A stretch of DNA of 61,911 nt from contig NIVC01004067.1 in NCBI GenBank assembly GCA_002269645.1, forward strand, positions 1-61,911, written 5' to 3'. The notes under the pieces were generated by a model that made no database searches, had not been told where the DNA came from, and saw only the letters and a program-made list of their open reading frames with translations. The translations under genes were made by a program, and so were the position numbers. This document shows positions 5,604-46,655 of the stretch, one piece after another; the first letter of the stretch is position 1; the number at the start of each line of letters is the position of its first letter. This DNA is from Macrostomum lignano (Eukaryota).

Positions 5604-5689
5604 TAACATTAACTATTTCGAAGTAAATTGACTTTTATCAGTCCTTTCACCGTGTCAGCGCCTGGGATTGGATGTGCGTTCCTCTCTCT

Positions 5690-6039
<350 letters not shown>

Positions 6040-11996: not shown

Positions 11997-14900
11997 CTAG
12001 TACAGTACTGGGTCGCCGTAGCGAGCAGGCGGATTGTTTCTCCTAGGCCGAAGCCTGCGTGGCGAAGCCGGAGATGCTGCAGCGTGAACCGGTTGGTCCT
12101 GCGGCGCTTGGATGTCTTGATGCACCGCCGCTGGCACATAGACAAACTGTGAGTCATCTCCATCCGAGTCGGGCTCCGACTCTTGCGGCTCTTCGCTCAC
12201 AACAACAACAGCACGTTGCCCCTTCCGTTTTCTGCGGCTTTGCTTCGGCGGTCTTGAAGCCTGCAGCTCAACGGGACGTTGAGGCACTTTGCGAAGGTTG
12301 TTATAGTGCACCACCCTGCTTTTCCTACTGTTCTGATGGAGAATTCTGAAGTTAATGTCTGACAGCTTTTCTACCACCTCGGCTGGGCCCTTCCAATAAT
12401 TGTGAAATTTTGCCGCTTCGTTCGGCTGCAGGGCCGGCGAATATTCGAGTACCGAATCTCCTACTTCTATCGTCGGACCTCTCTAACCCTTGAGTCGTAT
12501 ATGATTTTCTGTTTTCGCTGGTAATGTTGCAGATTCTGCCTTACATGTGAATGTGCCTCCGCGAGCCTGTGCCCCAGAGACAACAGGTACTCCGGTGCAT
12601 CAGCCGGTACTGCTTCCGGCAGGTTCCCAATATCGACTGGAAGGCGCATTTCTTTTGCGTACAACATGTAGTACGGAGTGTACCCAGTGCCACGATGGAC
12701 ACTACTGCGGTAGGCGAGAAGTGATGGAGCGATCAGCTCCTCCCAATCACTCTCAGCCTCACTCTGCCGGCATTTTATCATATTTTTTAGCGTTTTGTTA
12801 AAGCTTTCTGCCTGGCCATCGGCCATGGGATGATAGGCCGTTGTTCGGCATTTTTTAACAGCCATCAGCTGACACAGCTGCTTTACCAGCAATGACTCAA
12901 AGTTGGTGCCTTTGTCCGTCACAAGGAACTCGGGGCAACCAAACTGCGCTATCCAATTGTCGAAGATGGCCTTTGCCACCGTGCTCGCACGCTGATTTGA
13001 AAGTGCCACCGCAACTGGCCACTTAGTGAACGAGTCCTGGATGGTCAAAATGAATCTGGACCCATTCCTAGATCGCGGCAATGGCCCGACGATGTCGCAC
13101 ATTATTCGCTGAAACGGAGCTTCTGACAGAATCGGGTGCAGCGGAGCTCGATTGGCCTGGCCTGGTTTTGACCGGGCACAATGCACACAGCTCTTGCAGT
13201 ACTCCTCGATCTTTCTTGAAATTCCAGGCCACCAAAATCTAGCCTTCACCTTCTCCTGGGTCTTTTTTATCCCTAGGTGACCACCTGTGACTCCGTCATG
13301 CAACTCACTGAAGACCTTCTGAAACAAGCTCGGCGGCAAGATAATTTTCGGAACCTCAGACCCAGGACCTTGAAAAACCAGAACCTGCGCATCAAGCCTG
13401 ATCAGCTGACGCTGAGACCACAGACACCTCTCCTCCCAGCACATCACCTGCGGTGGAGTTGACGCGTCGACATGATCTGTCAAGAAATTATTGATGATCT
13501 TCAGCTTTGGCTCTGCTTCTTGAGCTGACTGTATATCTTCCTTCTGTAGCACACTCCGAAATATCGCATTGACACCATTGCTGCGCTGAGCCGGTGCGCA
13601 ACTAGGACAAGTCTCATGCCCTGTGGGCCTTCGGTATTTCCGAGACAAAGAGTCTGCGTTGCCGTGATGTTTCCCGGCCCGGTGTTCTATAACAAAGTCA
13701 TAGTTCTGCAGTGTTTCCAGCCATCGAGCACATTGACCCTCAACATCACGGATGCTGGCGAGCCACTGCAGGGCTTTGTGATCAGATCTCACAGTGAATT
13801 TTTTCCCGAGTAGATAGTACCGGTACTTTTTGATAAAGTGCACAATTGCCAACAGCTCGAAACGGGTGGTGCAGTAGTTTTTCTCGCTTGCCTGGATCAT
13901 TCGAGATCCATAGGCTATCACCTTCTCAGACCCGTCCGACTGGCGCTGTGACAGCACCGCACCAAGCCCAATTCGAGAGCTGGCATCCGTGTCAAGAATA
14001 AACTCACCAGCGTTTGGCGAGAAGTCTGGAAAAGCCATAACGCTTGGCGAACACAGAGCCGCTTTCAGACTGTTGAACGACTGCTCTTGGGCTGGGCCCC
14101 ATTTGAACTCGGCATCGTTCGCTACAAGTCTGTAGAGCGGAGCGGCAATCTCGGAAAAATTTGGAATGAAAGCTTTGTAGTAGACGCACAGTCCGAGAAA
14201 CGATTGGACTTTGGCCACACTGCAAGGCCTGGGCCAGTCCTGGATTTCGGCACACTTTTCTGGGTTCGTCGCTATTTCATCCTTGGAGATCACGTGACCT
14301 AAGAAGCTAATCTTTTCGGCCAGAAAGACACATTTTGCTGGCTTCAGCTTGATGTTAGCTCTTCTAAGACATTGAAACACATGCTCAAGGCGTTCGAAGT
14401 GCTGCTGCACAGTCGTGGAGAAGACAACTATGTCGTCGAAGTAGACGAGGCATTCCTTCCAGTTGACTTCTGACAGTGCCATGGACATGAGTCTCGTAAA
14501 GGTTGACGGGGCGTTTTTGAGCCCGAAACTCATGCACTTCCACGCAAACTGTCCCCGATTCGGCACCACGAAAGCGGTCTTTAACTGGTCTTTCGACTCC
14601 AGTGGGCACTGATGGTACCCGGATGCCAGGTCCATCGTGGAAAAGATGCAGTTTCCCCCGAGCGCATCAAGAGTCTCATCCATTCTGGGCGGAGGCAGAG
14701 GATCAGGCACGGTCACGCTGTTCAGGCGCCTGTAATCCAGACACATTCTGAGACTGCCATCCGACTTTCTAACCGGAACCACTGGGCTCGACCAGGGTGA
14801 CTGACAGGGATAGATGCGGCCTTCAGCCAGCAGTTGATCAACCTGTTTATCAACCTCACTTCTCCAGTGCGGCGGGATTCTGCGCAAGGGTTCAGTCACG

Positions 14901-15890
14901 GGCTTCGCGTTACCCGTGTCGATTTCGTGTGCCATCAGATTCGTGAGCCCGAGTTCAGAGCTGTCTTTGGCAAAGACGTCACGATTTTTGGCAACCAGGG
15001 AAACAAACTCTCTTGCCTCTGCGTCTGATAGGCCGCAGGCACCCCACTCTTTGACTTCGCTGAGGGGACTCCACAGCTCTCCTTCTGACTGGACGGCATT
15101 CAGCTGCAGCTCCGCTGGCTGCTGCGCAGAGACCGGCGAAAACCAGCCAACTCGAGTGCCCCGCCTCATCGACAAACTGCACTCCGACGTGTTCAGAATC
15201 CTGACAGACAACTGACCCTCTTGATCAGGCAACTGCACCGATCTGGCCAGAAAATGATCACCTGCTGCCCGACGCTCGGACTCCACCATTCCAGGAAACT
15301 GAAATCCCCTCACCCCGCGTCTCTGAAGGCGGACTGGGACCAGCTTCTCCTCACCGGCATCCATCCGGACAGCCTGGCGCAGCACGATGCGGCACACAAG
15401 AGGTCTGTCAGCACACAAACTGAAAGGAAAGACACACGATTCTGTCTGCAGGCAGTGTCTAGCGAAATCAATTATCATGCAATGTCTAATGAAAAAATCG
15501 GTTCCTAAAATGCATGGCTGTGAAATTTCATCGACAACTAAAAATTCGTGCTCGAATTTCGTCTCACCAATCGAAAAAGTCAGATTAATTCGGCCTAAAA
15601 TTTGAATAGGCTCACCACTCGCTGTGTAAATTGAAAAATCAGTACTACAATTCTGAATTTTGTTCTTAATTTTGCGGATTCTAAGAAACGACTACTAAGT
15701 AATGACACTGTGGACCCGCTGTCCAGCAAACAAGCAACCAAGGGCCCAGATTCAAACTTTGCGTCAATATAACCCAGTCCAGTTCCACCCAGCACACTCT
15801 GGATCTGGGTTGTGGGCCCTGGCGCTTCTTCAATCACTGCAGACGGGGCCCGGGACGCTGGCCTGGCCGGGCCCCCATCCCGTTTCCCTG
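11997..15890 (-). CDS. pol: Gypsy Pol (protease, RT, RNase H, integrase with GPY/F tail); two small frameshifts near 15677 and 12482
   Basis: LLDSGSTVS protease continues in another frame as ..CILGTDFF; RT YFDD; RNase H ILDTDAS; integrase HHCC, DIVGP, TDKGTNF, AESFN; WKGPAEVVEKLSDINFRI lies after a further frameshift. Confidence 0.93.
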
Positions 15891-16793
15891 ACTCTGAGTA
15901 GCCTGCTGACTCTGGCACCTGGAACGAGTGTGGCCCTGCTGGCCGCAGGCAAGGCAAACTACTCGATTCCTACAGTCCGCCGTTGAGTGCCCCATCTGAA
16001 GACACCTCCTACAGGTTCTGCCCGCCTGAGGCGCGGCTGCCGGCTGCTGCGGATTCGGCTGCACCGCCGAGGCCGACGCCCCTCCTTGCTTCAGCTGCGC
16101 GATCTCTGCCTTCAAGCTGTCGATCTCCGCAGCCATGCGAGCTGTCTGACTGTCCGCTGCAGCAGCTGCCGCCTGACTGTTCACCACGTAAACTGATCGC
16201 TTTCCCTCCAGCAGCTTCATCGATGCGAGAGTCTGGCGCACTCGCTGGATCGCGGCCTGCAGCGTGTCAGGGTCTTGCAGCAAGACATTCTCAAGCACCC
16301 TGTCCGGAACTCGAATCCCCTTTAAGAATCGGTCTTTTGCTAGCTCATCCCTTTGCTCCCCTGGCAGAGCCGGATATGCCTTACGCATGAGCTCCCTGAG
16401 AGCGTCAGCGTAATCCTCTAGTGCTTCCCCCTCTCTCTGACTCCTGTTTTGAAATTCTGTCTTGTAGTCCTGGGGTGTGCGATTCTGACTGAAGCGAGCC
16501 TCCAGCTGCTCCACAAACTCTACGTAGTCCAAGTCATCATCCAGCTCGAGATTGGCCACTGCTTTAAAAGCCGTGCCAAAGTCCAACAGACTCAGCAAAT
16601 TCTGCTTCCGCTGATCCTCAGGGATCTGAGCAGCCTCGCAGTACGTGGAGAACTGTTGCAACCACAAAGCAAAATCTTGAGTCGGCACATACTTATTAGG
16701 ACGTGGAACGCGCTGGCCCACGTTTAACTGCTCCTGGATTCTCGCTGTCAAAGCACCGATAAGATCGTCTAAATTGGCCATGATCGCTTGCAC
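15834..16793 (-). CDS. gag: Gypsy Gag, intact ORF (319 aa from a non-ATG start; first ATG at 16781), two CCHC knuckles
   Basis: Capsid pattern FALWLQQFSTYCEAA; CRRCLQMGHSTADC and CLACGQQGHTRSRC. Confidence 0.93.
   Translation of the reverse strand: MQAIMANLDDLIGALTARIQEQLNVGQRVPRPNKYVPTQDFALWLQQFSTYCEAAQIPEDQRKQNLLSLLDFGTAFKAVANLELDDDLDYVEFVEQLEARFSQNRTPQDYKTEFQNRSQREGEALEDYADALRELMRKAYPALPGEQRDELAKDRFLKGIRVPDRVLENVLLQDPDTLQAAIQRVRQTLASMKLLEGKRSVYVVNSQAAAAAADSQTARMAAEIDSLKAEIAQLKQGGASASAVQPNPQQPAAAPQAGRTCRRCLQMGHSTADCRNRVVCLACGQQGHTRSRCQSQQATQSQGNGMGARPGQRPGPRLQ
15845..15888 (-). promoter_or_regulatory. Programmed -1 ribosomal frameshift signal (G GGA AAC + 9-bp GC stem)
   Basis: The heptamer at 15888-15882 is in the gag frame and its -1 frame is the protease frame. 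GGGGCCCGG/CCGGGCCCC hairpin starts 6 nt downstream. Confidence 0.8.
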
Positions 16794-18479: not shown

Positions 18480-19413
18480 ATGCATTCTCTGCTAATCATC
18501 TGCGCTGTCATGACAACTGCTGTGGCCGCAGACTCCGGCTGGGAGATCCACAGAGGCGACCTCGCCGAGTACCGGGTGCTGGCGGTGAAGCTGGCCATCA
18601 GCGACATTCACTGTACAATGGTTGCTGAGAACGCGGATGCCGTCCGCTTTGACGCGGCCTCGGGCTCCTGCTCGCTGCTGGCCTGCGATCGGGGAGCGAT
18701 GGACGCCTGCAGGAAGTGCCGCCACGCCAGCGACTCCAGCCTGCCTCAGCTGTGGGTGAGTGAGCTGGGCTTTGCTTTGCGGCTTCTGCACTTTTTACAA
18801 CCGCTTCAATATGCGTGCACGAAATCGCCCATTGCAGATGAGGAAGCCGGTGAAGTGCTGGACGACCTTCCAGCACAGAGTCGACGGCTCCGTCAGCTTC
18901 AACCAGAACTGGGCGGACTACGCGAGCGGATTCGGTCAGGGCGAGAGTCTCAACTACTGGATGGGACTGGAGCAGCTCCACCAGCTCACCGCCACTGGAG
19001 TGTGTAGAGTTCGCTGGGAGTTCAGCGACTGGAACGGCACCTGGTACTGGGCTGAGAATGCTCCGTTCTCTGTTGGCCCAACGAGCGACAAGTACAGGTG
19101 TTCGATGGGACCTCTGGACGCGAGCAGGTCGAGTGTCGGACAGCTTCCTGATACGAACTACTCTCCAAAAAACTGGCAGTTCAGCACTCCAGACTTCGAC
19201 AATGACAACTGGAGTGGAGACAGCTGCGCACAACACCGGTCCGCTGGGTGGTGGTACGGCGTGTGCGCATTCATGGAGCCGAACGGAGTCTACCAGGAGT
19301 ATCCCAATATTAACACACAGGGAATCTATTACTTTCTTCATGCATCTGGATCTGCTAGCGCACTTGTTTTGTCGTACTCGATGAAGAAGTTTGAGTGCCT
19401 GATTTTCAACTGA
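18480..19413 (+). CDS. Secreted PAN/apple-like + fibrinogen C-terminal domain (FReD) protein; exons 18480-18755 and 18838-19413; about 283 aa
   Basis: Signal peptide MHSLLIICAVMTTAVAA; phase-0 intron TGG|GTGAGT...TTGCAG|ATG (82 nt); FReD motifs FQHRVDGSVSFNQNWADYASGFG, YWMGLEQLH, FSTPDFDNDN, GWWY..C. Confidence 0.85.
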
Positions 19414-20147
19414 GCTGTTTTACGCCGAAAATGGTGATGTTCCGGAGTACGACACTCACTCTGGGAGATTTCTGCAGTATAAATTTTACTGATTTAGAGC
19501 TAATATCAGACTGTTTAGCTCTGTCTTGCTTAAATCTTGCTTATTTATCAGTTCTGAGCCTGTAGGGATTACTCAAAATATTACAATCTAACCTCATGAA
19601 GATTTTGAAGTGTTTGGTATTATTTTTTTCCGCAGCTCAGCTGCTGCATTCGCTGATTTATCGCATCCTGATCCCCATAGTTCTCAAGTCTAATTTTATC
19701 CAGCCACAAATTTTTAGTGCACGCTCCACCAGCCTAAGGTTTAGGTTGGTGGTGCAGCATGCCTGCATGAAATGGCCGTTTTCTCCTACTTACTCAATAT
19801 TTATAACGCCTCTCTATGTTTTATATACTACTGTAAACTGTTTGTTGCGATGCTTAATTGCATGTTTTTCTTCTAGAATAAGTAGTTGGTACATTAATTG
19901 GACTATATATTTTCAGTTCTACTAAACTTCTCACTATTTAGAAGCCCGCTCATATTGCCATTTTCTTGCAATGACCCGTTTGGAAATTGTCCAATCATCG
20001 CTTTCTGAATCAGGACTGACCGACCCCACACTAGAAGAATTGGGAGATTTTTTGTTATTTTGTTGCGCTGATTGAACCACTGATAAACGAATTTAATCGC
20101 CATGTCAATTTTTGTAGCTCTTTGTTTTTTGAGTGTTTGCCTTATCT

Positions 20148-21018
20148 GTACTCAGGTAGGCTACACTCAGGTAGGCTACACTCAGGTAGGCTACACTCAG
20201 GTAGGCTACACTCAGGTAGGCTACACTCAGGTAGGCTACACTCAGGTAGGCTACACTCAGGTAGGCTACACTCAGGTAGGCTACACTCAGGTAGGCTACA
20301 CTCAGGTAGGCTACACTCAGGTAGGCTACACTCAGGTAGGCTACACTCAGGTAGGCTACACTCAGGTAGGCTACACTCAGGTAGGCTACACTCAGGTAGG
20401 CTACACTCAGGTAGGCTACACTCAGTAGGCTACACTCAGGTAGGCTACACTCAGGTAGGCTACACTCAGGTAGGCTACACTCAAGTAGGCTACACTCAGG
20501 TAGGCTACACTCAGGTAGGCTACACTCAGGTAGGCTACACTCAGGTAGGCTACACTCAGGTAGGCTACACTCAGGTAGGCTACACTCAGGTAGGCTACAC
20601 TCAGGTAGGCTACACTCAGGTAGGCTACACTCAGGTAGGCTACACTCAGGTAGGCTACACTCAGGTAGGCTATACTCAGGTAGGCTACACTCAGGTAGGC
20701 TACACTCAGGTAGGCTATACTCAGGTAGGCTGCACTCAGGTAGGCTACACTCAGGTAGGCTACACTCAGGTAGGCTACACTCAGGTAGGCTACACTCAGG
20801 TAGGCTATACTCAGGTAGGCTATACTCAGGTAGGCTATACTCAGGTAAGCTACACTCAGGTAGGCTACACTCAGGTAGGCTACACTCAGGTAAGCTACAC
20901 TCAGGTAGGCTACACTCAGGTAGGCTACACTCAGGTAGGCTACACTCAGGTAAGCTACACTCAGGTAGGCTACACTCAGGTAGGCTACACTCAGGTAGGC
21001 TGCACTCAGGTAGGCTGC
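20148..21018. repeat. 15-bp tandem repeat (TACACTCAGGTAGGC), about 58 copies
   Basis: Read directly from the sequence. Confidence 0.98.
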
Positions 21019-21588
21019 AGCCCTAAAGATGGTAACAAGCTTTTAAGACAGAAATTTTGTACCAAGCTTCATAAGTTTTAATCGGCAAAACGTTTATAAC
21101 TTTTAAAACGCCAGAATTTTACATCACGTTAATCTGATTATTGCAAAATTTTCGAATGCCTACAGAAAGTTTTCGCACATAATGTCGTGTCACTCTAACA
21201 ATATATTCACGTAAAAATTACTGTTCCTGTTCTTATTTTGCCTACTTATATATATTATATGTAGCTTTGCTCTCAAGAACAAATAAACAACTACATCCTT
21301 TTGACAATTGAATGCATGTCATTAGTTTCATTTGTCCAAATGCAACAATTTGCTGCAAACGAGTGAAACAAGCCGGTACCGTCTACTTGTCTGCAGAGTT
21401 TGCGTAGAACTGCGGTCGCCAAACTCCAGCCTCTCTATCCGGCCCTCGGGTCCTTTGAAACTTCACCATAGCAATCCGGCCCGCTCAAAGTCTGTGTCTC
21501 TTCTCAGTTCTATTTTCTCCTTTTCTCTTCTCTTCTCCCCTCACATCTCTCTCATCTTCTCTTTTCTTTCTTATTAGCCCTGAGGAAC

Positions 21589-25869: not shown

Positions 25870-28800
25870 ATGCAGAACTTGGGGCCGCAACTCGGAGCGA
25901 TAGGAGGCTCTCTGAGCAGCACCTGCCTTTGCGTCAAAGGCCTGAGTCCCGATAGCAGCGACCTCACTATTCGGCAACTGATGACTCAGGAAGCTGGAGT
26001 TCCCGATCACGCCATCGTGTATTCTCAGGCTATTTTAGACAAAACCACCGGCCATTGTAGAGGTTTGATTCCATTATATTATGTTTATGCTATTTTATTG
26101 TTGAATGCATTTATGTTTACTCCTAAGACCATCCGCTAAACCCTAACCGACACCAGGCCTCGGCTTCGTTGAGTTTCAAAACGAGTCGCAGGCCAACCAG
26201 GCTTTGGAGGCGATTCAGCGGCGGCCAGTGCAGGGCGATAGACGCTTGCAAATCGGATTCGCTCTTGTGAGTGCTAGTGTCATACGTCAGCAAACATTTT
26301 CGTAGGGAAGTCCACAAAATATGAAAGTAAAGCTTATAGTTAAATCATTTTTAATGGCTATTCAATCTAAACAGGAGAACGAGAAGGATCTTACTAGCGT
26401 GTACTTGTGGAATTTGCCGGTGTCGTGCAGCGATTATTGGATTCGACAGGTCCTTGTCAATAGCCTCATCATGAACAGAAAGATTACTCAGCCGATTAAG
26501 TCCGTCAAGGCCCTTCCAGCCAATCCAAAGTACTCAATCGGATTCATTCGCTTCGGAGAAGAGAGCGATGCAGCAGCAGCGATTGAGTTCTTTATCAGAA
26601 ACGGTCTCGAGTTCAGCTATCGGTTCGGATGCTCGGACCGGCTTGCGGCTAGACTGGCAGACAAAGCAAGCCCCAGAGCAAGGCTTGATCAGATCGCTCG
26701 GCTGTCTGCCAATCAGCGAGGGTCTATGAATGATGGCCGGTCAATGAGCTTTGAGGACATCGTAAAGCCGAATCCGGTTCTCTCTGTGAGTCAACTCGAT
26801 CTGCTGAATTTTAACTACAACTATAGAACGAATCGATTTAATCCTATTGTCTGACAGGGGAAGGCTTTGCAGAGCGATTCAAAAGCAGCAAAGTGCGTAC
26901 ATCATTGTGCTATGTGAAACACAGAAACAATCGCTTTAAAGCCCAGACAGGAAGTTAGAAAACAGATGCTGTGTTCCCTTATCCGTCGTACCAAGTAACG
27001 TTGCTTTGTCACTAGGATACTCGAATGTACTCGTATATGATGCATTGTGCTTTTCTTTATCAATTCACCTATATGTACTTTATTCAACTTTATTTTACCG
27101 ATTATCCGAATTTAATTACTTTTTACATCAGGAAATCTCTGCGGAGCCACTCCAGCTAAAGGACGCTGAGAGCCCCTTCAAGTGGAATGCTCACGAAGGC
27201 TCACTAAGAACTCCAGAGGATGTAATTCGCAAACTGTCTGAAAAACTTAAGCTGGAGCCGATGCTATCCGCAGCGTATGGAGGTCTGCTTGCTGCTTACC
27301 ATTCTGCTGCTTCTCCAAGCCGCAAACTGATTGATTTTAGCAAGGCAAGAAAGCACCTGAAGGATGCAATAGAAGCTGCCAATAGTGCCCATCAACATCA
27401 CGTTAGGTGCGACTTTGTCCTGGAGGCCATCTCTCTTCATCTGGATCAACAACAAAAGAAAACGTCTCCTGAGTTCGATGAACGCGTAAAGGCTCTGGGT
27501 CAGGCTTGGAACGTTCCAGATAATGCACAGCGAATCGAAGTCAGAGCCAATGCATTTCACGTCAAGGCACTGGCACTGTTTAACCAAGGGATAGAGAAAT
27601 ACGTCCAGGCAGAGGAAGCTGTTAGGACCAGCTTGAGCTTGCGACCCGACAATTTTATGTGCGTCTACCTGCTGGCGTACATTTTAGCGCGCTTGCGCAG
27701 ATACCGCAAAAACAGGGCTGCTGCGGGTCCAGAAGAGCTGCTCCTGTGGAAGCGGAGCGAGGAGCTCGCTAACTTGCAGAACCTGGACGATGCGCCCAAA
27801 GAAATTCGGCTGTATTACCAGCAGTTTTTAATTAACTATTCAGAGGCACTTTTGAATAACGCTGACCTAAAGGAAAAGTGCCAAAGCTTGGCTTCTGAAA
27901 CGTTCCTGGCATTAAAGAACCTGAACGCAGAAGATTTAGAATGCCACTACCGAATCGCTCTCAAATGTGAAAAAGTGTTTCGAATTCTCAAATTGCAATT
28001 GAATGACACTCAAACCCCACGAAGCATCTTACTCAGCCTAAAAGATGTAACAAAAAACTCTCAGTTATTTTTTTCATTGGCAAAACTGATGGAAAATGAA
28101 TCTGACTATGAAGAGTATGAGAGTTTGCTCGTCCGAGCTCAGCAGGTGGCGCCCGAGCCTGGACACATTTGGGTAGACGTGTGTTTGCAGGAATACCGAG
28201 AGGAAAGACCGAATGATTTCACTCACGAGTTTATTTTGGACGAGTTTGATACGAGGATAGCCAAATACAAGGATAATGTTAGAAACAAGTCTGCAATTCA
28301 GTATGCCAAGGGAGCCTACATGTGTCGGCGGCAGCTCGTTGACAGCGGCTTTGAGTCGATGGTCGAAGCAGTTCAAGTGTGTCCTGATGTCAGAGTTTAC
28401 TTTCCTCCTTGGAAAAAAGAAAAAATATTGCAAATTCTATGCGAACGGACAGAAAGACCCGAACTGGAGGCTTGGTTCAGGCTGCACATCATGAACTGGG
28501 ATCTTCAATCTACACAAATTATTTTCGAACGCTTTCAGAAGGCGCTGCAAAGTGAAAACTCGGATCACCAGCTGGTGTACGAGCATCTTGGTCTGTTATA
28601 CCTTCGCCTTCAAGACTTCAAAGCTGCCAAAGAAAACTTCCAAAAACTTCAGTCTGAAAATCCTCGTAAAAACTCTCTGCTGTCGTCCGCTTTGCTCAAA
28701 CGTGCCGAATCGAGAGATGAAGCTGAAAAGAGAGACTTGATTGTCGAGGCTCTCCGACTTGGAAACCCGGAGGCTTGCAAGCCCGCTCAACACTTGCTGG

Positions 28801-29690
28801 ACAACCGACGGGATCATCAGCGGCGGTTCCCTCTAGAAGCCATCAAGCAGAAGTACTGTCCTGAGCACCCCGACAGACCAGTGCAGATCGTGCCGTGGCT
28901 GTTCAGCAATGACTCGTACGAGCTGCTCGCTCTGATCAGCATCGCGTCACAGGAGGACTATGAAAACTACACAGAAACGTCGCCTCTGGTCCAGACGGAT
29001 CTGCAGAAATAGAGACTGGCTCTGGAGCGAGTAGAGCAGCTCGGGAAACAGACTGAGAACGATTATTATAATGCCATCATGGAAACCCTGAAACTCGCAA
29101 AAAGTGCAATGGATGGATTAACTGCAAAACTGGATGGCTCCGAAATGGACAAGAAACTTGATTACTTCCCATACGGCTTCCGGTATATGAATGTAAAAAA
29201 GGATGAGACAAAAAAGTTGATTTGCGGATTACAGAAACAAAGCCACGAAAATCGAAGAACGGAGATTAACAAGAAACTTTCAAATTTGCTCAAGTTGAAG
29301 GCATCCGCCACTGATGAAGCGAATCAGAGAGTAAATGCGCTCGTTGATTTGCTGAGCACTCGAGAATCAAAAGCGTTTCAGTTCCAGCAGCCATTTGCTT
29401 GGCTTGTGATCTGGCAGGAGTTGAGAAACAAAGCGGAGCACTCGAGCGCACAGAAGCCCATGAAGACTTTGATTCCAGAGTTATTGGAGGCCTGGAACTG
29501 CGACCCAGATTGTGCTGGAAGCGTCGCGCACATGGCTGCGGAGTTCGCTGAGGAGACACGACTGATATTCGAGGCCGAGACTGAGGCGCTTCGAGCAGCC
29601 ACTGGTAAGACCGGAGTACCAGTAGAAGATTTGAACTCAGCCCAGTCGAGACCCACCAAGAAGTTTTTGGCTTTGCATCTTTCTGACTGA
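25870..29690 (+). CDS. RRM-RRM-TPR-like protein, paralogue A; exons 25870-26062, 26157-26266, 26375-26785, 27132-29690; in-frame TAG at 29010-29012
   Basis: All three introns are GT-AG, phase-consistent and shared with paralogue B. RNP2 CLCVKGL and RNP1 RGLGFVEF; second RRM VYLWNLP...IGFIRF; helical repeats such as YEHLGLLYLRLQDFKAAKENFQKL. Confidence 0.8.
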
Positions 29691-30580
29691 AAGCTTTGTT
29701 TATCTATTGACCATTTCTGTGTTTTCGCTTGAGGCTTTTCTGAATTATGTACCGACAATGTTGCATGTAGTGTCCTGAACGGCGCGTTCAGACCGGATAC
29801 TGACTGGAATATGACTAACTACTGACTAAAGTTGCTGCTGCCCGAACGCTTTTTTTATTTACATGTACTCCCGTACTCAGTCTCGGCACCCGCTGTAGAT
29901 TTTTAAGGGTTTTTAGCGTTGACAGTTTCGTATTTGCTTTGCTTTTTAACTTCGACCTGTTTCGTTATTTTTTCTTACCTAACAAATTATGTAATTTTCC
30001 CTTTGACCAAGAAGTGCACTGTTGTGCAGCCTTCATGTACTTTTATTAATTTTGTCTTTTGCGAGTTTAAAATCACTTTCCAATTTTTTATTAATTTGCT
30101 CATTGAAGTTACTCTTAGCAGGTCCTGGTTTCTTCTGAGTTCGAGCAACTTCTCGCTTCATTCATTTGGCCTAATATATAAGGTGTGATAAAATTCCATT
30201 GCCGTTTTTAATTGAAGCACGCAGCCACACACAACGCTGCTGAACCAACATTGACTTTTAGCTATAAGTACGAGCTATTAGATTCCTTGATTGACTTTTG
30301 TAAGCCCTCAAAATTTTTGTATGCTTATGTTTTTCATGTACTAGGCTTTTTGGCTCTCTTTAGGCCTTTCTAAATCCCACTGATATGCCACCAAAGCTGT
30401 CCAATGGGTTACTTCGGCCATCTAAGTCAATTCACAACGTCACCACAAAGTAACAGTGCTTTGCTTTTCTTATTAAATCCAACTGTTGATACCAAGTTGT
30501 GCTACTGCTGTTAACTGTTTCTTAGAATCAGTCTGTGAATTAGTCGCTTAGTACATTTTGAAAGTATTCAACGTATATAG

Positions 30581-31336
30581 TCTGGTAGCGTCTAATGTAT
30601 TATTCTGGTAGCGTTCACTATATAAGTCTGGTAGCGTCTATTGTATTATTCTGGTAGCGTCTATTGTATTATTCTGGTAGCGTCTATTGTATTATTCTGG
30701 TAGCGTCTATTGTATTATTCTTGTAGCGTCTATTGTATTATTCTTGTAGCGTCTATTGTATTATTCTTGTAGCGTCTATTGTATTATTCTAGTAGCGTCT
30801 ATTGTATTATTCTGGTAGCGTCTATTGTATTATTCTGGTAGCGTCTATTGTATTATTCTTGTACCGTCTATTGTATTATTCTTGTAGCGTCTATTGTATT
30901 ATTCTGGTTGCGTCTATTGTATTATTCTTGTAGCGTCTATTGTATTATTCTTGTAGCGTCTATTGTATTATTCTGGTTGCGTCTATTGTATTATTCTTGT
31001 AGCGTCTATTGTATTATTCTAGTAGCGTCTATTGTATTATTCTGGTAGCGTCTATTGTATTATTCTGGTAGCGTCTATTGTATTATTCTTGTAGCGTCTA
31101 TTGTATTATTCTTGTAGCGTCTATTGTATTATTCTAGTAGCGTCTATTGTATTATTCTGGTAGCGTCTATTGTATTATTCTGGTAGCGTCTATTGTATTA
31201 TTCTGGTAGCGTCTATTGTATTATTCTGGTAGCGTCTATTGTATTATTCTTGTAGCGTCTATTGTATTATTCTTGTAGCGTCTATTGTATTATTCTAGTA
31301 GCGTCTATTGTATTATTCTGGTAGCGTCTATTGTAT
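30581..31336. repeat. 23-bp tandem repeat (GTAGCGTCTATTGTATTATTCT[G/T/A]), about 33 copies
   Basis: Read directly from the sequence. Confidence 0.97.
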
Positions 31337-32750
31337 AAGTTGGCCTGAGCGGTCTTTACTGGCACATGTACTTTTCCAATCCGGCCGATACCGGGATCAG
31401 AGGGTTAAGACAAGAGGCTCTTTTGTATATCTCTCTGGATTACTCCACAATTCTCTCTCTTAGAAAATTTCTTTGAACTGTTTGTTTCTCAGCTTGAAAT
31501 TGAATAAGTCGCTCTGAACTTGGAAACTCTAAGGATGTATAGATTGAACTGCTATTAGCCTGCTTGCAAACGAGTGCTCACAGACGGTTGGTTTATTTGA
31601 CAGAAAACTCGTTCCTGTATATACCCAAATTTCTCAGATACAATTATAAAAATAATATTTCCTTAATTTATTTCCTGCATTAGAAAAAATTATTTACCGT
31701 ATTAAAACAATTATTTGGTGCATTAAAACAAACAAATTTTAGCATCTCGCGTAGATTTAATTTCTTAGAAAGGATACAATATTATTTGAGTATTACTGTT
31801 TACATTGATAAAAATATTCGAGTAGCACTATTACATTCAAAAGATTATTTTTTGTTTTAAAAATCAAATAAGTTGTTGCTCAAAGTTTCGAACTTGCACT
31901 GTGACGTATCAGCATTTTTCTTACTCGGAAGTTCTTGCAAAATGTGTGTGGGACTTTGAATAGAAAACTCTTCCTCAATGTACCAGCGGACCCACCCCAT
32001 GGGGTCTGAGAAGCAGAGCGACCATGAATTTCTGAATCGTTGATAATTTGAAACAGAACTATCTAAGCAATGTCAGTATAAATATAGAAATTTTCATAAA
32101 TTTCAAGTTTATTATTTCGAAACTTATTGATTAAAAAATGAAGAATTGTATGCAACAGTTTCTATTTTAAAAACTGCTTCGCTTGACAGCCGGCAAGAAC
32201 GCGGTGTAATAAGAGGACAAAGTTGTAGCGATAAACTGTGGAGAGCGGCGCAATTGTAGCTACTTTTGCTTAAGAGTACGCTACTAACAGTAGTATATGG
32301 CTAAGCAGCTATGAACGATTTACTAGTAAGAAGAATTAGTTAATCTTATTATTCAATGCGTACGTACGCTAAAGACTGATTATTTATTATAACATGCTAC
32401 GTTTTACAAGGTTTCATAGACTGGCTCTGATGCGCCCAACCAAGTCTGCCATACGCTTGCAGAAGAGACTACAAATTATATGTTCAGATATGAGTAAAGT
32501 CTCTCAGAAACGGAATCTAATTAAACCAATAAACAAACATATTACACTGGAATAAATTCGCGCAAATAATTATAACAGCGAAGACCTAATATCAAGTTTG
32601 GTTAAAATTCAAAGTGAGGCGTTTCAAACAGACAATTCAAACAGGAGGGTCGCAGTAAAAAGAAACAGGGGTGAGCGAAGGCGATCGATAATTTTATTGC
32701 CCTCACACACCACCAGATATTCACAATTGGGTGTACGAGCATACATGTAC

Positions 32751-32751
<1 letters not shown>

Positions 32752-32793
<42 letters not shown>

Positions 32794-32803
32794 GAAAGAG
32801 AGA
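32752..32803. repeat. (GA)n microsatellite
   Basis: Read directly from the sequence. Confidence 0.9.
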
Positions 32804-32941
32804 GGGCTGAGGAGAGAGCCCGGCGTAGAAAAAAATGAAGAAATCCAAGAGTCACAAGACCTACGAGTATTCACAACAAACAGCAACATCGAGAGTTTAC
32901 CGATCAAATTGTTTATGCAAACTTCCTCTCCATTTTTCTTT

Positions 32942-34091
32942 ATCCATTCTATTCCTGCACCCATGATAGGCTAGATTAGCAATCCATTCTATTCCTGCAC
33001 CCATGATAGGCTAGATTAGCAATCCATTATATTCCTGCACCCATGATAGGCTAGATTAGCAATCCATTCTACTCCTGCATCCATGATAGGCTAGATTAGC
33101 AATCCATTCTATTCCTGCATCCATGATAGGCTAGATTAGCAATCCATTCTATTCCTGCATCCATGATAGGCTAGATTAGCAATCCATTCTATTCCTGCAC
33201 CCATGATGGGCTAGATTAGCAATCCATTCTATTCCTGTACCCATGATAGGCTAGATTAGCAATCCATTCTATTCCTGCACCCATGATGGGCTAGATTAGC
33301 AATCCATTCTATTCCTGCACCCATGATGGGCTAGATTAGCAATCCATTCTATTCCTGCATCCATGATAGGCTAGATTAGCAATCCATTCTATTCCTGCAC
33401 CCATGATAGGCTAGATTAGCAATCCACTCTATTCCTGCACCCATGATAGGCTAGATTAGCAATCCATTCTATTCCTGCACCCATGATAGGCTAGATTAGC
33501 AATCCATTCTATTCCTGCACCCATGATAGGCTAGATTAGCAATCCATTCTATTCCTGCACCCATGATAGGCTAGATTAGCAATCCACTCTATTCCTGCAC
33601 CCATGATAGGCTACATTAGCAATCCATTCTATTCCTGCACCCATGATAGGCTAGATTAGCAATCCATTCTATTCCTGCACCCATGATAGGCTAGATTAGC
33701 AATCCATTCTATTCCTGCATCCGTGATAGGCTAGATTAGCAATCCATTCTATTCCTGCACCCATGATGGGCTACATTAGCAATCCATTCTATTCCTGCAC
33801 CCATGATAGGCTAGATTAGCAATCCATTCTATTCCTGCACCCATGATAGGCTAGATTAGCAATCCACTCTATTCCTGCATCCATGATAGGCTAGATTAGC
33901 AATCCATTCTATTCCTGCATCCATGATAGGCTAGATTAGCAATCCATTCTATTCCTGCACCCATGATAGGCTAGATTAGCAATCCATTCTATTCCTGCAC
34001 CCATGATAGGCTAGATTAGCAATCCATTCTATTCCTGCACCCATGATAGGCTAGATTAGCAATCCACTCTATTCCTGCATCCATGATTAGC
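32942..34091. repeat. 40-bp tandem repeat (ATCCATTCTATTCCTGCACCCATGATAGGCTAGATTAGCA), about 29 copies
   Basis: Read directly from the sequence. Confidence 0.98.
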
Positions 34092-34417
34092 TGAGATTCG
34101 CATCCTATTCTTATTTCGCTTTCATCTTTAAAATGATTGTTCGGATGTTTTCACTTGACAGGCAAACTCCATGATTTAAGTATGTGAACCGAAAATATAA
34201 TTGCATGCATGCATTCGAAATTTTTATTGCATAAAGTGAATAAATGAAAAAAAGTTCCGGAAACGCCATTACCAGCCTAGTTAAGTTGGCTGCGGGGACA
34301 GACAGCATCGGCAGAGCATTCAGTTCGGCAGTTTTATAATTTTTGATAGCTTGTGCAGGACAGGAGGCACAGGTGTCGTCTTTGCAGTGTTGGACAACTT
34401 CAATTGGTGCTTTGGCC

Positions 34418-37400
34418 TCACTTAGTAATTGCTTTTTGAAGCTCCTCAGTCTCGGCCTCGAATATCAGTCGTGTCTCCTCAGCGAACTCCGCAGCCATGT
34501 GCGCAACGCTTCCAGCACAATCTGGGTCGCAGTTCCAGGCCTCCAATAACTCTGGAATCAAGGTCTTCATGGGCTTCTGTGCGCTCGAGTGCTCCGCTTT
34601 ATTTCTCAACTCCTGCCAAATTACAAGCCAAGCAAATGGCTGCTGGAACTGAAACGCTTTTGATTCTCGAGCGCTCAGCAAATCAACGAGCGCATTTACT
34701 CTCTGATTCGCTTCGTCAGTGGCGGATGCCTTCAACTTGAGCAAATTTGAAAGCCTCTTTTTGATCTCTTCTCGTCGTTTTTTGTGCGTTAATTGTTTCT
34801 TTAATGCGCAGATTTTGTTATCAGTGTCCGGCCCTTTTATAAAGCTGAAGCCGTATGGGAAGTAATCAAGTTTCTTGTCCATTTCGTAGCCATCCAGTTT
34901 TGCAGTTAATCCATCCATTGCACTTTTTGCGAGTTTCAGGGTTTCCATGATGGCATTATAATACTTGCTTTCAGTCTGTTTCCCGCGCTGCTCTAGACGC
35001 TCCAGAGCCAGTCTCGATTTCCGCAGATCCGTCTGGACCAGAGGCGACGTTTTTGAGTAGTTTTCATAGTTCTTCTCTGACGCGATGCTGATCAGAGCGA
35101 GCAGCTCGTACGAGTCCTTGCTGAACAGCCACGGCACGATCTGCATCTCACTCTCGGGGTCTTTAGGACAGTACTTCTGCTTGATGGCTTCTAGAGGGAA
35201 CCGCAGCTGATGATCCAGTCGGTTGTCCAGCAAGAGTCGAGCGGGCTGGCACGCCTCCGGGTTTCCAAGTCGGAGAGCCTCGACAATCAAGTCTCTCTTT
35301 TCAGCTTCATCTCTCGATTCGGCACGTTTGAGCAAAGCGGACGACAGCAGAGAGTTTCTGCGAGGATTTTCAGACTGAAGTTTTCGGAAATTTTCTTCTG
35401 AAGCTTGAAAGTCTCGAAGGCGAAAGTATAACAGACCAAGATGCTCGTACACCAGCTGGTGATTCGAGTTTTCACTATTTAAGGCTTCGGTATAGAGCTG
35501 AACAATTCTCTGTGGTTCATCTGACTGCAAGTCAAGGTCCAGCATATGCTGTTTAAACCAAGCCTCGAATTCGCATCTGTCAGTCTTCTGGCTCAGATTT
35601 TTTAGCGTCTCATCTTTTTTCGATTTATGGATATGAACTCGAACCTCAGGATAGACCTGCACCGCTTTGACCATTTCTTCAAAACCATCAGCAACCCTCT
35701 CTGTTTCAGAAAATGTCATCATAAAGGCTCCCTTCGAGTACAGACAAACGGCTTCGTACCTGGGATAATCCTGATGATATCTTTCAGCGAGAGTGTCATA
35801 CTCATTCAAAATATCGACGGCCGAAAACTTGTCGCTTCTTTTTTGTTTGAAGTTTTAATAATAAATATCAACCCAAATGTGTCCAGGCTCATAAGACAAC
35901 TCTTGGGCCCTTATCAGCAGCTCTTCGCACCTTTCATCTTCTTTTTTCTCTTCAGCCAACATCGCTAATCTGAAAAGCAGATCAGAATTTTTAGTATCCT
36001 TCTCTAGGCGTTGCAATATTTCCTGGAGTTCCTGCGTTTCTGGATGCTTGCGAATCCGAAAGATTTTTTCACACCTGAAGACAATTCGGTAATGTTCATC
36101 CAATACCTGAGTACTTATGTTTCTCAATGCTTGGTACGTGGCATTCGTGAGTTCCAGGCACTTGTCTTCTAAGCTCCGGTTGTTCAAAATAGCCTCCGCA
36201 TAGTTTATTAAAAACTGATAGAAGTACATTTTTGTTCCTTCATTCTTATCCTGCCACCGGTGTTCATTTGCCAGATCATATGCACGATTCCACAGGAACA
36301 ACTCCTCCGCATCAGCAGGCGTCCTGTTGTTGTGATGGCGACGCACTCGCGCACGAATATACGCCAGCAGGTAGATGCACATGAAGTTATCCGGTCGCAA
36401 GCTCAGACTTGATTTCACAGCTTCCTCTGCCTCATCGTACTTTTTTATGCCTTGGTGAAAAAAGTCCAGAGCTTTAACGTGAAAAACGTTGGCTCTGATC
36501 TCGATGCGCTTGGCCTCATCTTGAGTGTTCCAGATCTTGTTGAGGGCCTTGACGTGTTCAGTGAAGTTGAGTTGGTTCCGGCTCTGCTTAGCATCCAGGT
36601 TTAACTCAATGGCTTGCAAGACGAATTCGCATCTGACATGACCTTCATCTGCGTCTTTGCCATAGTCTACTGCGCTCTTCAAGTATTCCCTTGACTTTCT
36701 GAAGTCGATATGCTTACGCCGATTGAATCTGGTTCCGTGATAAGCAGCCAGGAGGCCATGATAAGCCGATGAGAGCATTGGCTCAAGTTTCAGTCGGTCC
36801 AAAATTGTGTCGATCACATCCTCTATATTTTTGTCGGAGCCATCGTATGCGCACCATTTGAATGGGTTTTCGGCGTCTTTCAGTTCGAGTGGTTTCTTTG
36901 TGATTTCCTGAAATGAATTTCAGAATGAATGATCCGAGTCAATTGTTGAACAGTCAGTTAAGGTTTTGATTAATTATCCTTTTGAGAAATTCTCTTTAAG
37001 TAGAGTATGCTGTCTAATATTAGGAGAAAGACGAATCGCTCCGGCCCTTTTAGCGTGACTTTAACAATATACATAGCAATAGTAATATGCTATAGTCTTC
37101 TCAATTGTCATATCAATGCTTTAACGAGCTACTACTCAGCATTATTCCCCTCAGTGCCACTCTGCATCATTCTCCTACTGTATTAACCTCCAGACTTTGC
37201 AAGTATCGAATGAGATAAGCGATAAGGATTCAAAGAACCACAGCAGCATCTCAGCTGACAGCAGCTGCAAGTTGCATTTACATGTACTCGTATTTTGTAA
37301 GCTTGGTCCGTTCGTACTATTAGTATGAGGCGATATTAGAGCATTTATATCTTAATACGAGCCATGTAGAGCATATCACTAGTCTGGTGTAGGGTAAAAC

Positions 37401-38796
37401 CGAGGCTTGCTTGACTTAGCCTGCAGAATAGGTTTGATGCAATCAAAAGGCTAAACGGTGTCCTTTTAGACTCGCTTTACTTAGGCAGCTACCCACCTCC
37501 AACCCTAATTACAATTGGGTAGTACAGCCATGAGGAAACTTACAAGAAGATGCGCGCTCGGCTTCACAATATCTTCAAGGCAGACTGGTCGACCACCGAC
37601 ATCACGGGTCTTTTTTTCAGAAAATTTAGCAGCAAGTCGCCCAGAGCATCCATATTTGTGGGAGAGCCTTAGCCCATTGTGATTGATGAGTTGGATAACA
37701 CGTGAAGCCGTGAACTCCGTTTTAAATTTCACAAGGCCTGTTGAATAATATGGGTTAGCACGAAAAGTCCTGAATGACAAGATCGCATCCTCGCGACAAT
37801 TGCATTCGTATAGTAGAAACTGTCTAATCCCCTCCATCGTGCAGTTGACAGGCAAATTCCATACGAACATCTCTTTGCCGTCCTTTTCTGCCTCCTGTAT
37901 TTTGTACACGGTGGGTGCTCGGCATTGCATTTGAAATGCTGCGCTATCAGAAAGTTTGATGTCTAATAAAAAATATCGAAGACTCACCCGAGCGAATTCG
38001 ACCTTCAATTGTCCCTGGCTGGCATGTTTCGTGGCTTGCAGCTGCTGAATATTTCTTACTGCCATCTTCGCCCGCTCTGCGTTTCGAAATTCAGCGAAGC
38101 CGGTCCCTAAATGTGAGTGAAAGTTCTTGTTCACTTTTCTTGCTCTTCGACCACAGTTTCTTTGTTTTGAAGCCTTATTTTTTTGGTTTGAAATTGAGTA
38201 CTAGTAGTTCACTATCGTACGAGTATCATTTATCATGATCTATTATAGTAATTACGTAGGTACTCACAATTAAATATTTTAAATTTTCATCACTAATTCA
38301 GGGGTTGCAGCCCAGTGGTCAGCGCGTCGGACTCACGACTGAAAGGTCGGGGTTCGATTCTCGACTCATTCGGAACAATTTGTGTCCTTGAGCAAGACAC
38401 TTAAAACTCTGCATTGATTCAGTTCACCCAGCTGTAAAATGGGTGTCAGCATTACCTGGGGTAATTGAGGGTGTCGGGTTTGCCGGTTGCGTATTAAATT
38501 ATATATATATTATTACAATCGCAAACTAATGCACTTGGCATACTTTGCATGATAAAACAGACTACATAAGAAATTGAAATCGCACCTTTACACTGGCCAG
38601 ATTGCGAATCCAAGATGGTTTGAGCAAACACTATGGAGTGATCAGGAACTCCGGCTTCGTGCGCAATGAGCTGCCGAATTTTCAGATCGGTTGTGCCGGG
38701 AGACAAGCCCCGGATGAAGATTCGGGTGCTGGACATGCGACTGTTACTGCTGGAGTCACTGGTGGGCACGCTGGCGGCGGACGATGAAGCTTGCAT
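34418..38796 (-). CDS. RRM-RRM-TPR-like protein, paralogue B; exons 38796-38586, 38106-37988, 37894-37544, 36907-34418; in-frame TAA at 35857-35855
   Basis: Same intron positions and phases (1,0,0) as paralogue A; RIFIRGL / GTGFAEF RRM1; MFVWNLP RRM2; exon 4 is co-linear with A. Confidence 0.8.
38301..38495 (+). mobile_element. tRNA-derived SINE with CORE-like domain, inside intron 1 of paralogue B
   Basis: A-box-like GCAGCCCAGTGG, B box GGTTCGATTC, then TGTGTCCTTGAGCAAGACACTTAA...CAGTTCACCCAGCTGTAAAATGGG, which resembles the MIR/CORE consensus. Confidence 0.8.
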
Positions 38797-44589: not shown

Positions 44590-46655
44590 AGAAAGCAGAT
44601 TCTTATGTCCCACCAGATAGGCTAAAACACCGTCTCATAGCTGAATTTGAAAAGTTTATCTGTAAAGCTCAAGGATACGTTAAAAAGAGGAGCAATAGAC
44701 TGTGCACCAGGCTCTGAACGGCCTTAAGAACAATGAAAATATCAAGATTGTTGGCTTTGATAAAGGCTATGGCGTTGCTGCTTTAGATAGTAAGGATTAT
44801 TTTGACAAACTTGAGAAAGTGATCCAGGACAAACTCAAGTTTCAATGCCTTGCTACCGATGATCAAGTCACTATGGCTCACCCGGTTTAAAAAATGAGAA
44901 ATCTCTTCAGAATTTTTTGAGAACTTACGTTAAGCCACACGTGACCCTTGAGATCTTTAAGTTGATTGTCCCAAATGGTAGCCAACCTGGACAATTGTAC
45001 GGTCTGTGCAAAGTTCATAAGGATGGTCACCCTTTAAGACCTATTGTTTCGATGATCAACACTACGGAGTATGAGCTAGCTAAATTCCTTGACAATTTAA
45101 TTAAACCTGTTATCCCTTCTGAGCACTGTGTGAGTTCCAATCAACAGTTTATCGAGAGCCTCAGCAATACCACGATTAATCAAACTGACAGGCTTTATAG
45201 CTTTGATGTTGTTCCTCTGTTCACCAAAATCCCTCTCGAATTCACCATTGAGCTGGCTGCTGATCTTGTGTATGAAAAAGCCAATCCACCTCCTTTCTCT
45301 AAAGCCACTTTTAAGAAGATGCTCAAATTCGCCACCTCCGGCATCTTTCTTTTTCGGGACAAATATTACAGACATATTGATGGGTGTGCCATGGGCAGCC
45401 CTCTCGCCCCAACCCTCGCTAATTTGTGCATGACCCACTGGGAAAAGGACTGGATGGCCCTCCCTTGTGCGCCTCACTTCTACAAACGCTACGTCGATGA
45501 CACGTTTGCGATCTTTGAGGACGAAGCTAAGAAGGACGAGTTTTTTAAGTTAATCAATTCTACTCATGAGAATATCAAATTCACGGTGGAGGGAGGAGGC
45601 AGAAGACTTCCTTTCTTAGACATTGACGTTGACGCCACCGATGAAACTATTTCGACCAGCGTGTATAGGAAACCTAGCTTTACCGGGCTTATGCTTAGGT
45701 TTGACGCCTTGTGCCCTAGACAATGGAAAACCGGATTGATTCGTAGCTTTCTTCACCGGGCTTTTTCCACTTGCAGCTCTTGGAGACTTTTCCACAACGA
45801 AGTTGAAATCCTCACCAATCTGCTCAGCTACAATGGCTATCCTAAGAACTTTGTGATGAAAATTGTCAACTCTTTTCTCAATGACAAACTGACTGAACCT
45901 ACTCGGATCATCGGATGAAAGTTCGTGATTCCACCTCTGAATGTCCCTTGATCACTTTGCCTTACTTTGGTGTTTGTTCTGTAGAGTTTAAAAAGAAGTT
46001 AGAAAAGCTGCTCCGTAAAGACTTAAACACTCAAATCCGTGTTGTGTTTCGCACCGAAAAGATTGCTAAGTTCGTCTGCAAGTTGAAATCCAGTGTTCCA
46101 CGTCCTCTCGCGGCTGGTGTCGTGTATAAATTTGTTTGCTCTGAGGACCAGAGATTCTCCTACATAGGAAAAACTAAACGACACTTATGCACGAGGGTCA
46201 GAGAGCACTGGCTAAAAACTCTGCTATTAACGAACACCTGCTAACCTGCAATTCTTGTTGTGAGGCTGAACGACACGAAATGATAAAGGCTATTGATTTT
46301 TGTAATAGAGATCACATGCTCTGCCTATTAGAAGCCCTGTACATTAAGACCAAACAGCCCACGTTAAATAACCAGCTTGCGATGGGTGGGGCCAGCCGTC
46401 AACTCAGAATTTTTAGCTGATTTGTCAATGACCGGACTGGCTTGAAACTGATATGCACTTTACCCAACCAATACTGTATCAAAAAATTGACTACTATGTA
46501 CAAGTTTTAAATCATCAATTAAAAACTCAATTCAATTACTCTTGTTACTCTCAACTATCTGTATATACTGAATATTCGTTCAAATTGTTTCTTAAATAAA
46601 AAGACCCTGACGATGTCCTAATGCAAATAGACGAAATGCATCGGCAATAAAACTA
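44590..46655 (+). mobile_element. Penelope-like retroelement (RT + GIY-YIG endonuclease), 5'-truncated, several frameshifts
   Basis: FDKG, LYGLCKVHK..PLRPIVS, SFDVVPLFT, CAMGSPLAPTLAN, YKRYVDD, FLDI, GVVYKFVC...YIGKTKRHLCTRVREH, LEALYIK..QPTLN. Breaks near 44700, 44888, 45912 and 46215. Confidence 0.93.
46605..46644 (+). ncRNA. Minimal type I hammerhead ribozyme motif at the 3' end of the Penelope-like element
   Basis: CC-CTGACGA(46607-46613)-T-GTC...GAC-GAAA-TGCA-TC^GG with palindromic ATGCAT helix III; AATAAA follows. Predicted cleavage after 46642. Confidence 0.75.

Follow-up and report, generated by a model that had tools for sequence, protein, structure and literature searches.

The 61,911-bp contig NIVC01004067.1 of the flatworm Macrostomum lignano (assembly GCA_002269645.1, Mlig_3_7), which was analysed as a whole and is called the window here, carries a convergent (tail-to-tail) pair of genes, A (forward strand, 25870-29690) and B (reverse strand, 38796-34418). 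The best overall explanation, to which we assign a probability of roughly 0.6, is that A and B are old paralogues in which RBMS-like RNA recognition motifs (RRMs) are spliced onto an exon resembling the IFITs of vertebrates, and that they encode an RNA-binding protein. The IFIT-like domain belongs to a small family, and homology of this family with the IFITs is the most likely reading, one in which we have considerable confidence because an N-terminal motif, a colinear profile match and the best global fold match point to it together. The domain would then probably be homologous to the vertebrate IFITs both in fold and in descent.

Both genes consist of three small exons followed by one large exon, with the limits that an earlier note on this DNA had proposed (start codons at 25870 in A and at 38796 in B). 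All six introns are of the GT...AG type and the reading frame is maintained throughout, giving 1090 codons in A and 1056 in B; the lengths of about 1,050-1,090 aa quoted in that note therefore hold as codon totals, but as the sequence stands in-frame stops leave uninterrupted products of 864 aa (A) and 577 aa (B). The GenBank model of gene A has the same exons (P0004, BOX15_Mlig022517g2, 100% identical over 864 aa), and the exon structure of gene B mirrors that of A. Since the GenBank annotation of M. lignano is based on genome-guided assemblies of RNA-seq transcripts (PMC5730564), it supports indirectly, via transcripts, the splicing of the RRM exons of gene A onto exon 4, a junction that had been predicted from the sequence. 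The literature and supplements were searched for the locus tags of these genes and for data on their expression, without result.

The first RRM, encoded by exons 1 and 2, is clear: Pfam RRM_1 (PF00076) is matched at E 8e-9 in A and 8.3e-7 in B, both above the gathering score, a phase-1 intron splits the domain within its ribonucleoprotein motif RNP1, and the closest solved relatives are RBMS1 (6m75, E 7.9e-11) and RBMS2 (1x4e, E 1.3e-8). RBMS1 can be aligned beyond the linker as far as RNP2 of the second domain. Exon 3, which had been taken for a second RRM, has no Pfam match, and its two-sequence profile finds PDB matches at E 0.5-1.3 only, several of them RRM proteins. It proved weakly RRM-like when aligned with the first RRM by hhalign (E 1.4e-4, 53% probability), with 67 colinear columns in which RNP2 is paired with RNP2 and RNP1 with RNP1. 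Exons 1-3 are read here as a diverged RBMS-type tandem RRM.

Pfam detects only one or two marginal tetratricopeptide repeats (TPRs) in the helical domain encoded by exon 4: gene B has a single TPR_8 repeat (aa 714-742, 27.1 bits against a cut-off of 25.7), and gene A stays under the cut-offs, while its paralogue P0006 reaches 38.6 bits for TPR_2 against a cut-off of 27. A word-indexed search of 5.8 billion proteins gave four matches, all from M. lignano. When 1.84 billion representatives were scanned exhaustively by HMMER with a profile of A+B, eight proteins matched at E<=0.001, five from M. lignano, one (P0008) from the ENA assembly ERZ25074608 and two (P0009, P0011) that are generic TPR arrays; a further search brought the ENA members to six, namely P0008 and five more. 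By these matches the helical domain of A and B is shown to be a member of a small family, which has so far been seen only in M. lignano and in this one ENA assembly. The one ENA locus examined has a GC content of 36%, no transposon proteins shared between that assembly and the window were found, and no RRM exon was found near its member P0019. Among the M. lignano paralogues, P0006 (family match E 6e-42) has residues 1-1036 on one exon, with no RRM exons found within 10 kb upstream, P0017 is another paralogue without RRMs, and both P0006 and P0010 have long C-terminal repeats of the RGG type, which are likewise RNA-binding in kind. Since the domain has been paired independently with RRMs and with RGG tails, domain composition points to a function of the family connected with RNA.

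The family alignment, called A5, comprises ten sequences (the alignments are small, with effective sequence numbers, Neff, of 2.7 and 1.4). It was compared by hhalign with IFIT5 and IFIT1, the IFIT5 sequence having been checked as identical to PDB 3zgq_A over 482 residues and IFIT1 (residues 12-467) having been taken from the PDB alignment. The match reaches 96.8% probability (E 2e-10, score 86) over 172 colinear columns, pairing family residues 12-192 with IFIT5 15-191 and starting at a common LECHF(T/N)W motif. Reversed profiles scored at most 18, 20 column shuffles at most 25 and 20 shuffles of 17-residue blocks at most 36; together the shuffled and reversed controls span 11-36. Two segments that the earlier note had likened to the IFIT N-terminal repeats, whose peptides are indeed present in gene A, are exactly those paired with IFIT5 54-60 (YNLLAYV) and 145-187. 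The family members outside the window reach E 1e-9 against the IFITs by themselves; in BLASTP, P0019 gives only E 0.08 against IFIT5. The CHFTW motif is, as far as known, conserved across the whole IFIT family and is present in both aligned IFITs; in the paralogues P0006, P0017, P0019-21, P0008 and P0016 it occurs as ECHF(T/N)W at residues ~12-19, and the window genes read SPFKW (A) and NPFKW (B) at this place, keeping the F and the W alone. In A and B a single exon, beginning 15 codons before the F..W motif, encodes the IFIT-like region; in vertebrate IFITs, too, one large exon holds the coding region and is preceded by an intron at the extreme N terminus (PMC3688568), which makes the exon layout a weak point in common.

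A fold was predicted with AlphaFold2 from the ten-sequence alignment, in which no IFIT sequence was included. Its mean predicted local distance difference test (pLDDT) value is 72.9, with residues 1-560 mostly at 85-95 and the last ~290 poorly modelled; a prediction from the alignment of A and B alone (mean pLDDT 42) was set aside. In the Foldseek comparison with IFITs and generic TPR proteins that had been suggested for exon 4, the top match in PDB was IFIT5 (4hot_A, E 7.4e-7). The IFIT5 entries have target-normalised template modelling (TM) scores of 0.59-0.65 at ~6-7 A root-mean-square deviation over ~560 columns and the IFIT1 entries 0.47-0.63, whereas Ctr9, Ski3, OGT, subunits of the APC/C and BBS4 have TM scores of 0.09-0.47 despite Foldseek E-values similar to those of the IFITs. 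The family is thus predicted to possess an IFIT-type arrangement of TPR subdomains. The ~830-850 aa of helical repeats described earlier on one exon consequently divide into ~560 aa of confidently modelled TPR-type solenoid and a last ~290 aa that are helical and have a fold without a match.

Table 5 of PMC9677429 lists residues of IFIT5 at which mutations alter RNA binding, and these were mapped onto the family through the confident N-terminal alignment and, further along the chain, through a global alignment of low confidence. In the confident alignment, R186 corresponds to R187 (exon-4 numbering; Arg in 9/9 members), Y156 to Y157 (Tyr in 8/9) and Q41 to Lys/Arg (9/9), while K150 is replaced by Cys, Asn or His, T37 by Val, and E33 varies. 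By the global alignment, of low confidence, K257 is Lys in 6/9 members, and R253, R260, Y250, Q288 and the lysines of subdomain III are not conserved. Binding of 5'-triphosphate (5'-ppp) RNA exactly as in IFIT5 is unlikely, because K150, and probably R253 and R260, are not kept; judging from the residues that align, the family may still have an IFIT-like binding site, though not the IFIT5 triphosphate site as such.

Over the first ~1.4 kb of exon 4, A and B share 49-78% DNA identity, and because the proportion of synonymous differences is saturated (pS 0.78) while that of nonsynonymous differences is 0.29 (pN), the codon comparison indicates an old duplication under purifying selection. Towards the 3' ends two tracts of 93% identity, separated by a short unconverted patch, form inverted repeats between the genes. 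As these contrast with saturated synonymous sites upstream, they indicate that the 3' ~1 kb of A and B was homogenised by gene conversion between the convergent copies. In the first tract the rate of synonymous change (dS) is 0.074 and the ratio of nonsynonymous to synonymous change (dN/dS) ~1.0; in the second, which covers a conserved C-terminal module, dN/dS is 0.32, with six synonymous changes and one amino-acid change in a 103-codon core. A further family protein, P0003, mixes residues typical of A with others typical of B, so conversion among the copies is ongoing. The module comprises ~100 aa, and six divergent members all have R, E, W, W, N, H, A, H, A, E, F, E and T at the same 13 positions; no relative of it was found in Pfam or PDB, and AlphaFold modelled it poorly. 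An Rx4H motif (RNKAEH) in the module of A and B was considered as that of a HEPN RNase, but its Arg is absent from the paralogues and the likeness is probably a coincidence. Much of the 4.7-kb spacer between the 3' ends of A and B consists of two satellite arrays, with a 23-bp unit repeated 33 times and a 40-bp unit repeated 29 times, each 95-96% matching.

Each large exon contains one in-frame stop that went unmentioned in the earlier note. Both are single-base changes, TCG>TAG in A (the codon is TCG, Ser, in B, and Ser in P0002/P0003) and CAA>TAA in B (Gln in P0001, CAG in A), and the GenBank coding sequence of gene A, with its 864 aa, terminates at the TAG. Intact near-identical copies exist in another assembly: in P0002 (99.5% identity with A) and in P0001 (~96% with B) the place of the stop is taken by a sense codon. 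The nuclear genetic code of M. lignano is the standard one, and reassignment or readthrough of the stops is unsupported, the annotated coding sequence ending at the TAG and the other copies carrying ordinary sense codons; small introns that would remove the stops were likewise rejected, there being no GT...AG candidates around either of them. Since the module downstream of the TAG is constrained, the TAG of gene A is, on the codon evidence, recent or an error. The DV1 genome is partly duplicated, with 180 Mb in blocks of at least 95% identity (PMC5730564), which makes redundant copies with fresh nonsense mutations plausible.

Several results weigh against descent from a common ancestor with the IFITs. 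They would agree better with a lineage-specific TPR scaffold whose IFIT likeness is that of generic TPR sequence and solenoid geometry, with neither shared ancestry nor RNA-end binding; A and B would then be ordinary RRM regulators of RNA, for example in the germline, using their TPRs for protein-protein contacts. Sequence searches of PDB returned no IFIT chain for protein A (E<=1) or for the A+B and ten-sequence profiles (E<=10), and the A+B scan of the 1.84 billion representatives turned up no vertebrate IFIT. Aligned with the IFITs on their own, A and B give E 0.057 over 33 columns, in the same register and not significant; the IFIT-like domain claimed for these two genes therefore stands at the level of the family and not for the pair by itself, and the link of A and B to the IFITs is, in these comparisons, transitive via the paralogues. 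Because the generic TPR arrays P0009 and P0011 reach hhalign scores of 44 against the family and 40-57 against the IFITs, part of the IFIT-family signal is, by this measure, generic to TPRs. The fold evidence is a model from ten sequences in which Ctr9, Ski3 and OGT come close to the IFITs by E-value, K150 is exchanged, and most residues of the IFIT5 5'-ppp pocket are apparently not conserved, including, in the low-confidence global alignment, most contacts of the pivot and of subdomain III. We nevertheless regard a purely generic origin of the likeness as decidedly unlikely. The real score of 86 stands against at most 57 in any control, and the LECHF(T/N)W motif, which is not a TPR feature, is common to both families at the same distance from the N terminus. 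With both N-terminal motifs removed the alignment still reaches E 9e-6 in an unchanged register, four separate segments of the family find their best IFIT5 matches in the same order along the chain, and IFIT5, besides being the top Foldseek match, represents the only family with whole-chain TM scores of at least 0.6.

The nonsense codon in each gene weighs against an intact protein from this contig, as does the absence of gene B from the GenBank annotation, in which gene A is the sole call between 15870 and 39012. Both genes might be pseudogenes, redundant DV1 copies that are starting to decay, so that nothing functional is encoded here, a possibility that we take seriously without favouring it. 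The duplicated blocks of the assembly and the intact near-identical proteins known from another one would fit such decay, and so would the dN/dS of ~1.0 in the first homogenised tract; however, each gene has a single lesion, with zero frameshifts and all splice sites intact, selection is visible downstream of the TAG in A in the 103-codon core of the module, and even the truncated products would retain the RRMs and much of the IFIT-like domain. The same purifying selection, together with the single-base nature of both stops, would also be expected if these were base errors of the assembly or mixtures of haplotypes or paralogues and the locus encoded two intact proteins of ~1,050-1,090 aa. An independent ML2-based annotation indeed has Ser and Gln at the two positions in P0002 and P0001, but these proteins differ from A and B at several further positions and may be other copies, not the same locus. 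Errors in long-read assemblies are mostly indels and not substitutions, and we think this explanation rather unlikely.

Under the preferred explanation, that of old paralogues with RBMS-like RRMs joined to an IFIT-like exon, the two genes on this contig would either be redundant copies, in a genome that is duplicated in part, which were disabled recently, or carry base errors. The intact protein would be cytoplasmic and RNA-binding: its RRMs would hold single-stranded RNA, the IFIT-like clamp would engage an RNA end or a partner protein, and the conserved C-terminal module could be an effector or an element of oligomerisation or assembly. A role in defence (antiviral or anti-transposon) is possible; it would fit the lineage-specific expansion, the gene conversion and the relationship to IFITs, but other fast-evolving flatworm gene classes would look similar. 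A more far-reaching proposal is that IFIT-type clamps predate both vertebrates and interferon, and that the flatworm versions fused to RRMs or RGG tails sense or restrict foreign RNA of viral or retrotransposon origin independently of interferon, with the module as a new effector; we mention it as a speculation that is quite improbable at present.

The coordinates of the two genes and of other elements are collected in the table below. The window is eukaryotic and rich in transposons, with a GC content of ~35-53%. Its Ty3/Gypsy-type long terminal repeat (LTR) retrotransposon is apparently intact. The envelope-like open reading frame (ORF) of the second retroelement has a weak match to the Pfam family Monjiviricetes_fusion of viral fusion glycoproteins (E 1.9e-4, below the cut-off), and a gene matching the same Pfam family is found on the ENA contig that carries a member of the IFIT-like family, no similarity to the ORF of the window being found. 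The fibrinogen C-terminal globular domain is lectin-type and often used in invertebrate immunity. Simple or short-period repeats read as repetitive ORFs in several frames at three places, and a stretch in intron 1 of gene B resembles, by eye, a tRNA-derived core of the short interspersed nuclear element (SINE) type, unconfirmed by ARAGORN and Rfam, whose scans of the window found no RNA genes.

Table. Coordinates of features in the window (contig NIVC01004067.1)
Feature	Position	Strand	Description
Gene A exon 1	25870-26062	+	ATG and N-terminal part of RRM1 (RNP2); AG|GT donor; identical to P0004
Gene A exon 2	26157-26266	+	C-terminal part of RRM1 (RNP1, GLGFVEF); phase 1 entry
Gene A exon 3	26375-26785	+	Degenerate RRM2-like domain and linker
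Gene A exon 4, whole	27132-29690	+	Large exon, ends with TGA
Gene A exon 4, first ~560 codons	27132-28811	+	IFIT-like TPR solenoid (AlphaFold, Foldseek, hhalign)
Gene A exon 4, C-terminal ~290 codons	28812-29690	+	Predicted helical, fold without known match; low pLDDT; contains the C-terminal module
In-frame TAG, gene A exon 4	29010-29012	+	
Gene B exon 1	38796-38586	-	ATG and N-terminal part of RRM1
Gene B exon 2	38106-37988	-	C-terminal part of RRM1 (TGFAEF)
Gene B exon 3	37894-37544	-	Degenerate RRM2-like domain
Gene B exon 4	36907-34418	-	IFIT-like TPR domain and C-terminal region; 829 codons, ends with TGA
In-frame TAA, gene B exon 4	35857-35855	-	
Conserved C-terminal module, gene A	29277-29591	+	13 invariant positions
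Conserved C-terminal module, gene B	34439-34750	-	13 invariant positions
Inverted-repeat arm, first tract	28551-29191		Partner 34836-35476; 641 nt, 93% complementary
Inverted-repeat arm, second tract	29244-29609		Partner 34421-34786; 366 nt, 93% complementary
Partner arms of both inverted repeats	34421-35476		Inside gene B exon 4
Spacer satellites	30573-31336, 32942-34111		Between the 3' ends of A and B
SINE-like core	~38300-38440	-	Gene B intron 1
Ty3/Gypsy-type LTR retrotransposon	12467-16793	-	gag ORF (PNMA/Retrotrans_gag) 15834-16793; 1003-aa pol (reverse transcriptase (RT), RNase H, integrase) 12467-15478
Second retroelement	1588-5542	-	CCHC-knuckle gag-like ORF, RT fragment, envelope-like ORF 2316-3596
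RT ORF of a further retroelement	44917-45918	+	RVT_1, E 3e-9
Fibrinogen C-terminal globular domain ORF	18760-19413	+	E 1.3e-34
816-aa uninterrupted ORF	53392-55842	+	Four KY-like immunoglobulin-like domains (PF23265, E 1.1e-41)
Simple or short-period repeats	5628-6140, 20122-21081, 52074-52715		4-nt unit ('SVCL', opposite strand 'DRQT'); 'HSGRL'/'GYTQV'; ~66-nt proline-rich

Automated annotations label some mollusc and cnidarian proteins 'IFIT-like', and what is new here is mainly the flatworm family and its combination with RRMs or RGG tails, not that invertebrates have relatives of the IFITs as such. Liu et al. (2013) described IFITs in jawed vertebrates only, rejected invertebrate TPR candidates and tied the origin of the family to interferon, which invertebrates do not have (PMC3688568). 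Beyond that study our literature searches found no paper on invertebrate IFIT homologues or on an RRM-IFIT architecture. If the relationship is true, and given the repeated joining of the domain to RNA-binding modules, the link of the IFIT fold with RNA would be older than interferon, and M. lignano, for which transgenesis and RNA interference are available, would offer a tractable invertebrate model for what such clamps recognise. The locus also illustrates clearly how convergent paralogues are homogenised by gene conversion.

Helical repeats and RRMs are also combined in RNA-handling proteins or complexes of the SART3/Prp24 and CstF-77/CstF-64 types, where the repeats are half-a-TPR (HAT) or TPR-like (PMC12958091, PMC6294498); this is an architectural analogy only. 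The order there is the reverse (HAT repeats N-terminal, RRMs C-terminal) or the parts are separate subunits, and no sequence or fold match of these types to the flatworm proteins was found. With RBMS1, RBMS2 and RBMS3 (MSSP/SCR) the likeness extends to the tandem RRM arrangement with a short acidic linker, the first RRM, the linker and the start of the second RRM being alignable; unlike them, the flatworm proteins have a second RRM that is strongly diverged and lacks a Pfam match, and the RBMS proteins have no TPR domain.

The closest comparison is with IFIT5 and IFIT1 (3zgq/4hoq/4hot, 5udi/5w5h). Vertebrate IFITs have no known RRMs or RGG tails, and flatworms have no interferon system; insertions make the flatworm domain ~80 aa longer, a further ~290 residues come after it, K150 and, apparently, R253, R260 and most of the downstream RNA contacts are not kept, and the similarity lies below the detection limit of pairwise and HMMER comparison. 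In common with the IFITs, on the other hand, the paralogues have LECHF(T/N)W, reduced to F..W in A and B, the family profile is colinear over the first ~190 residues, and IFIT5 is the best global match of the modelled fold. The equivalents of R186 and Y156 are kept, and in both groups a single large exon holds the domain, whose N terminus comes directly after an intron.

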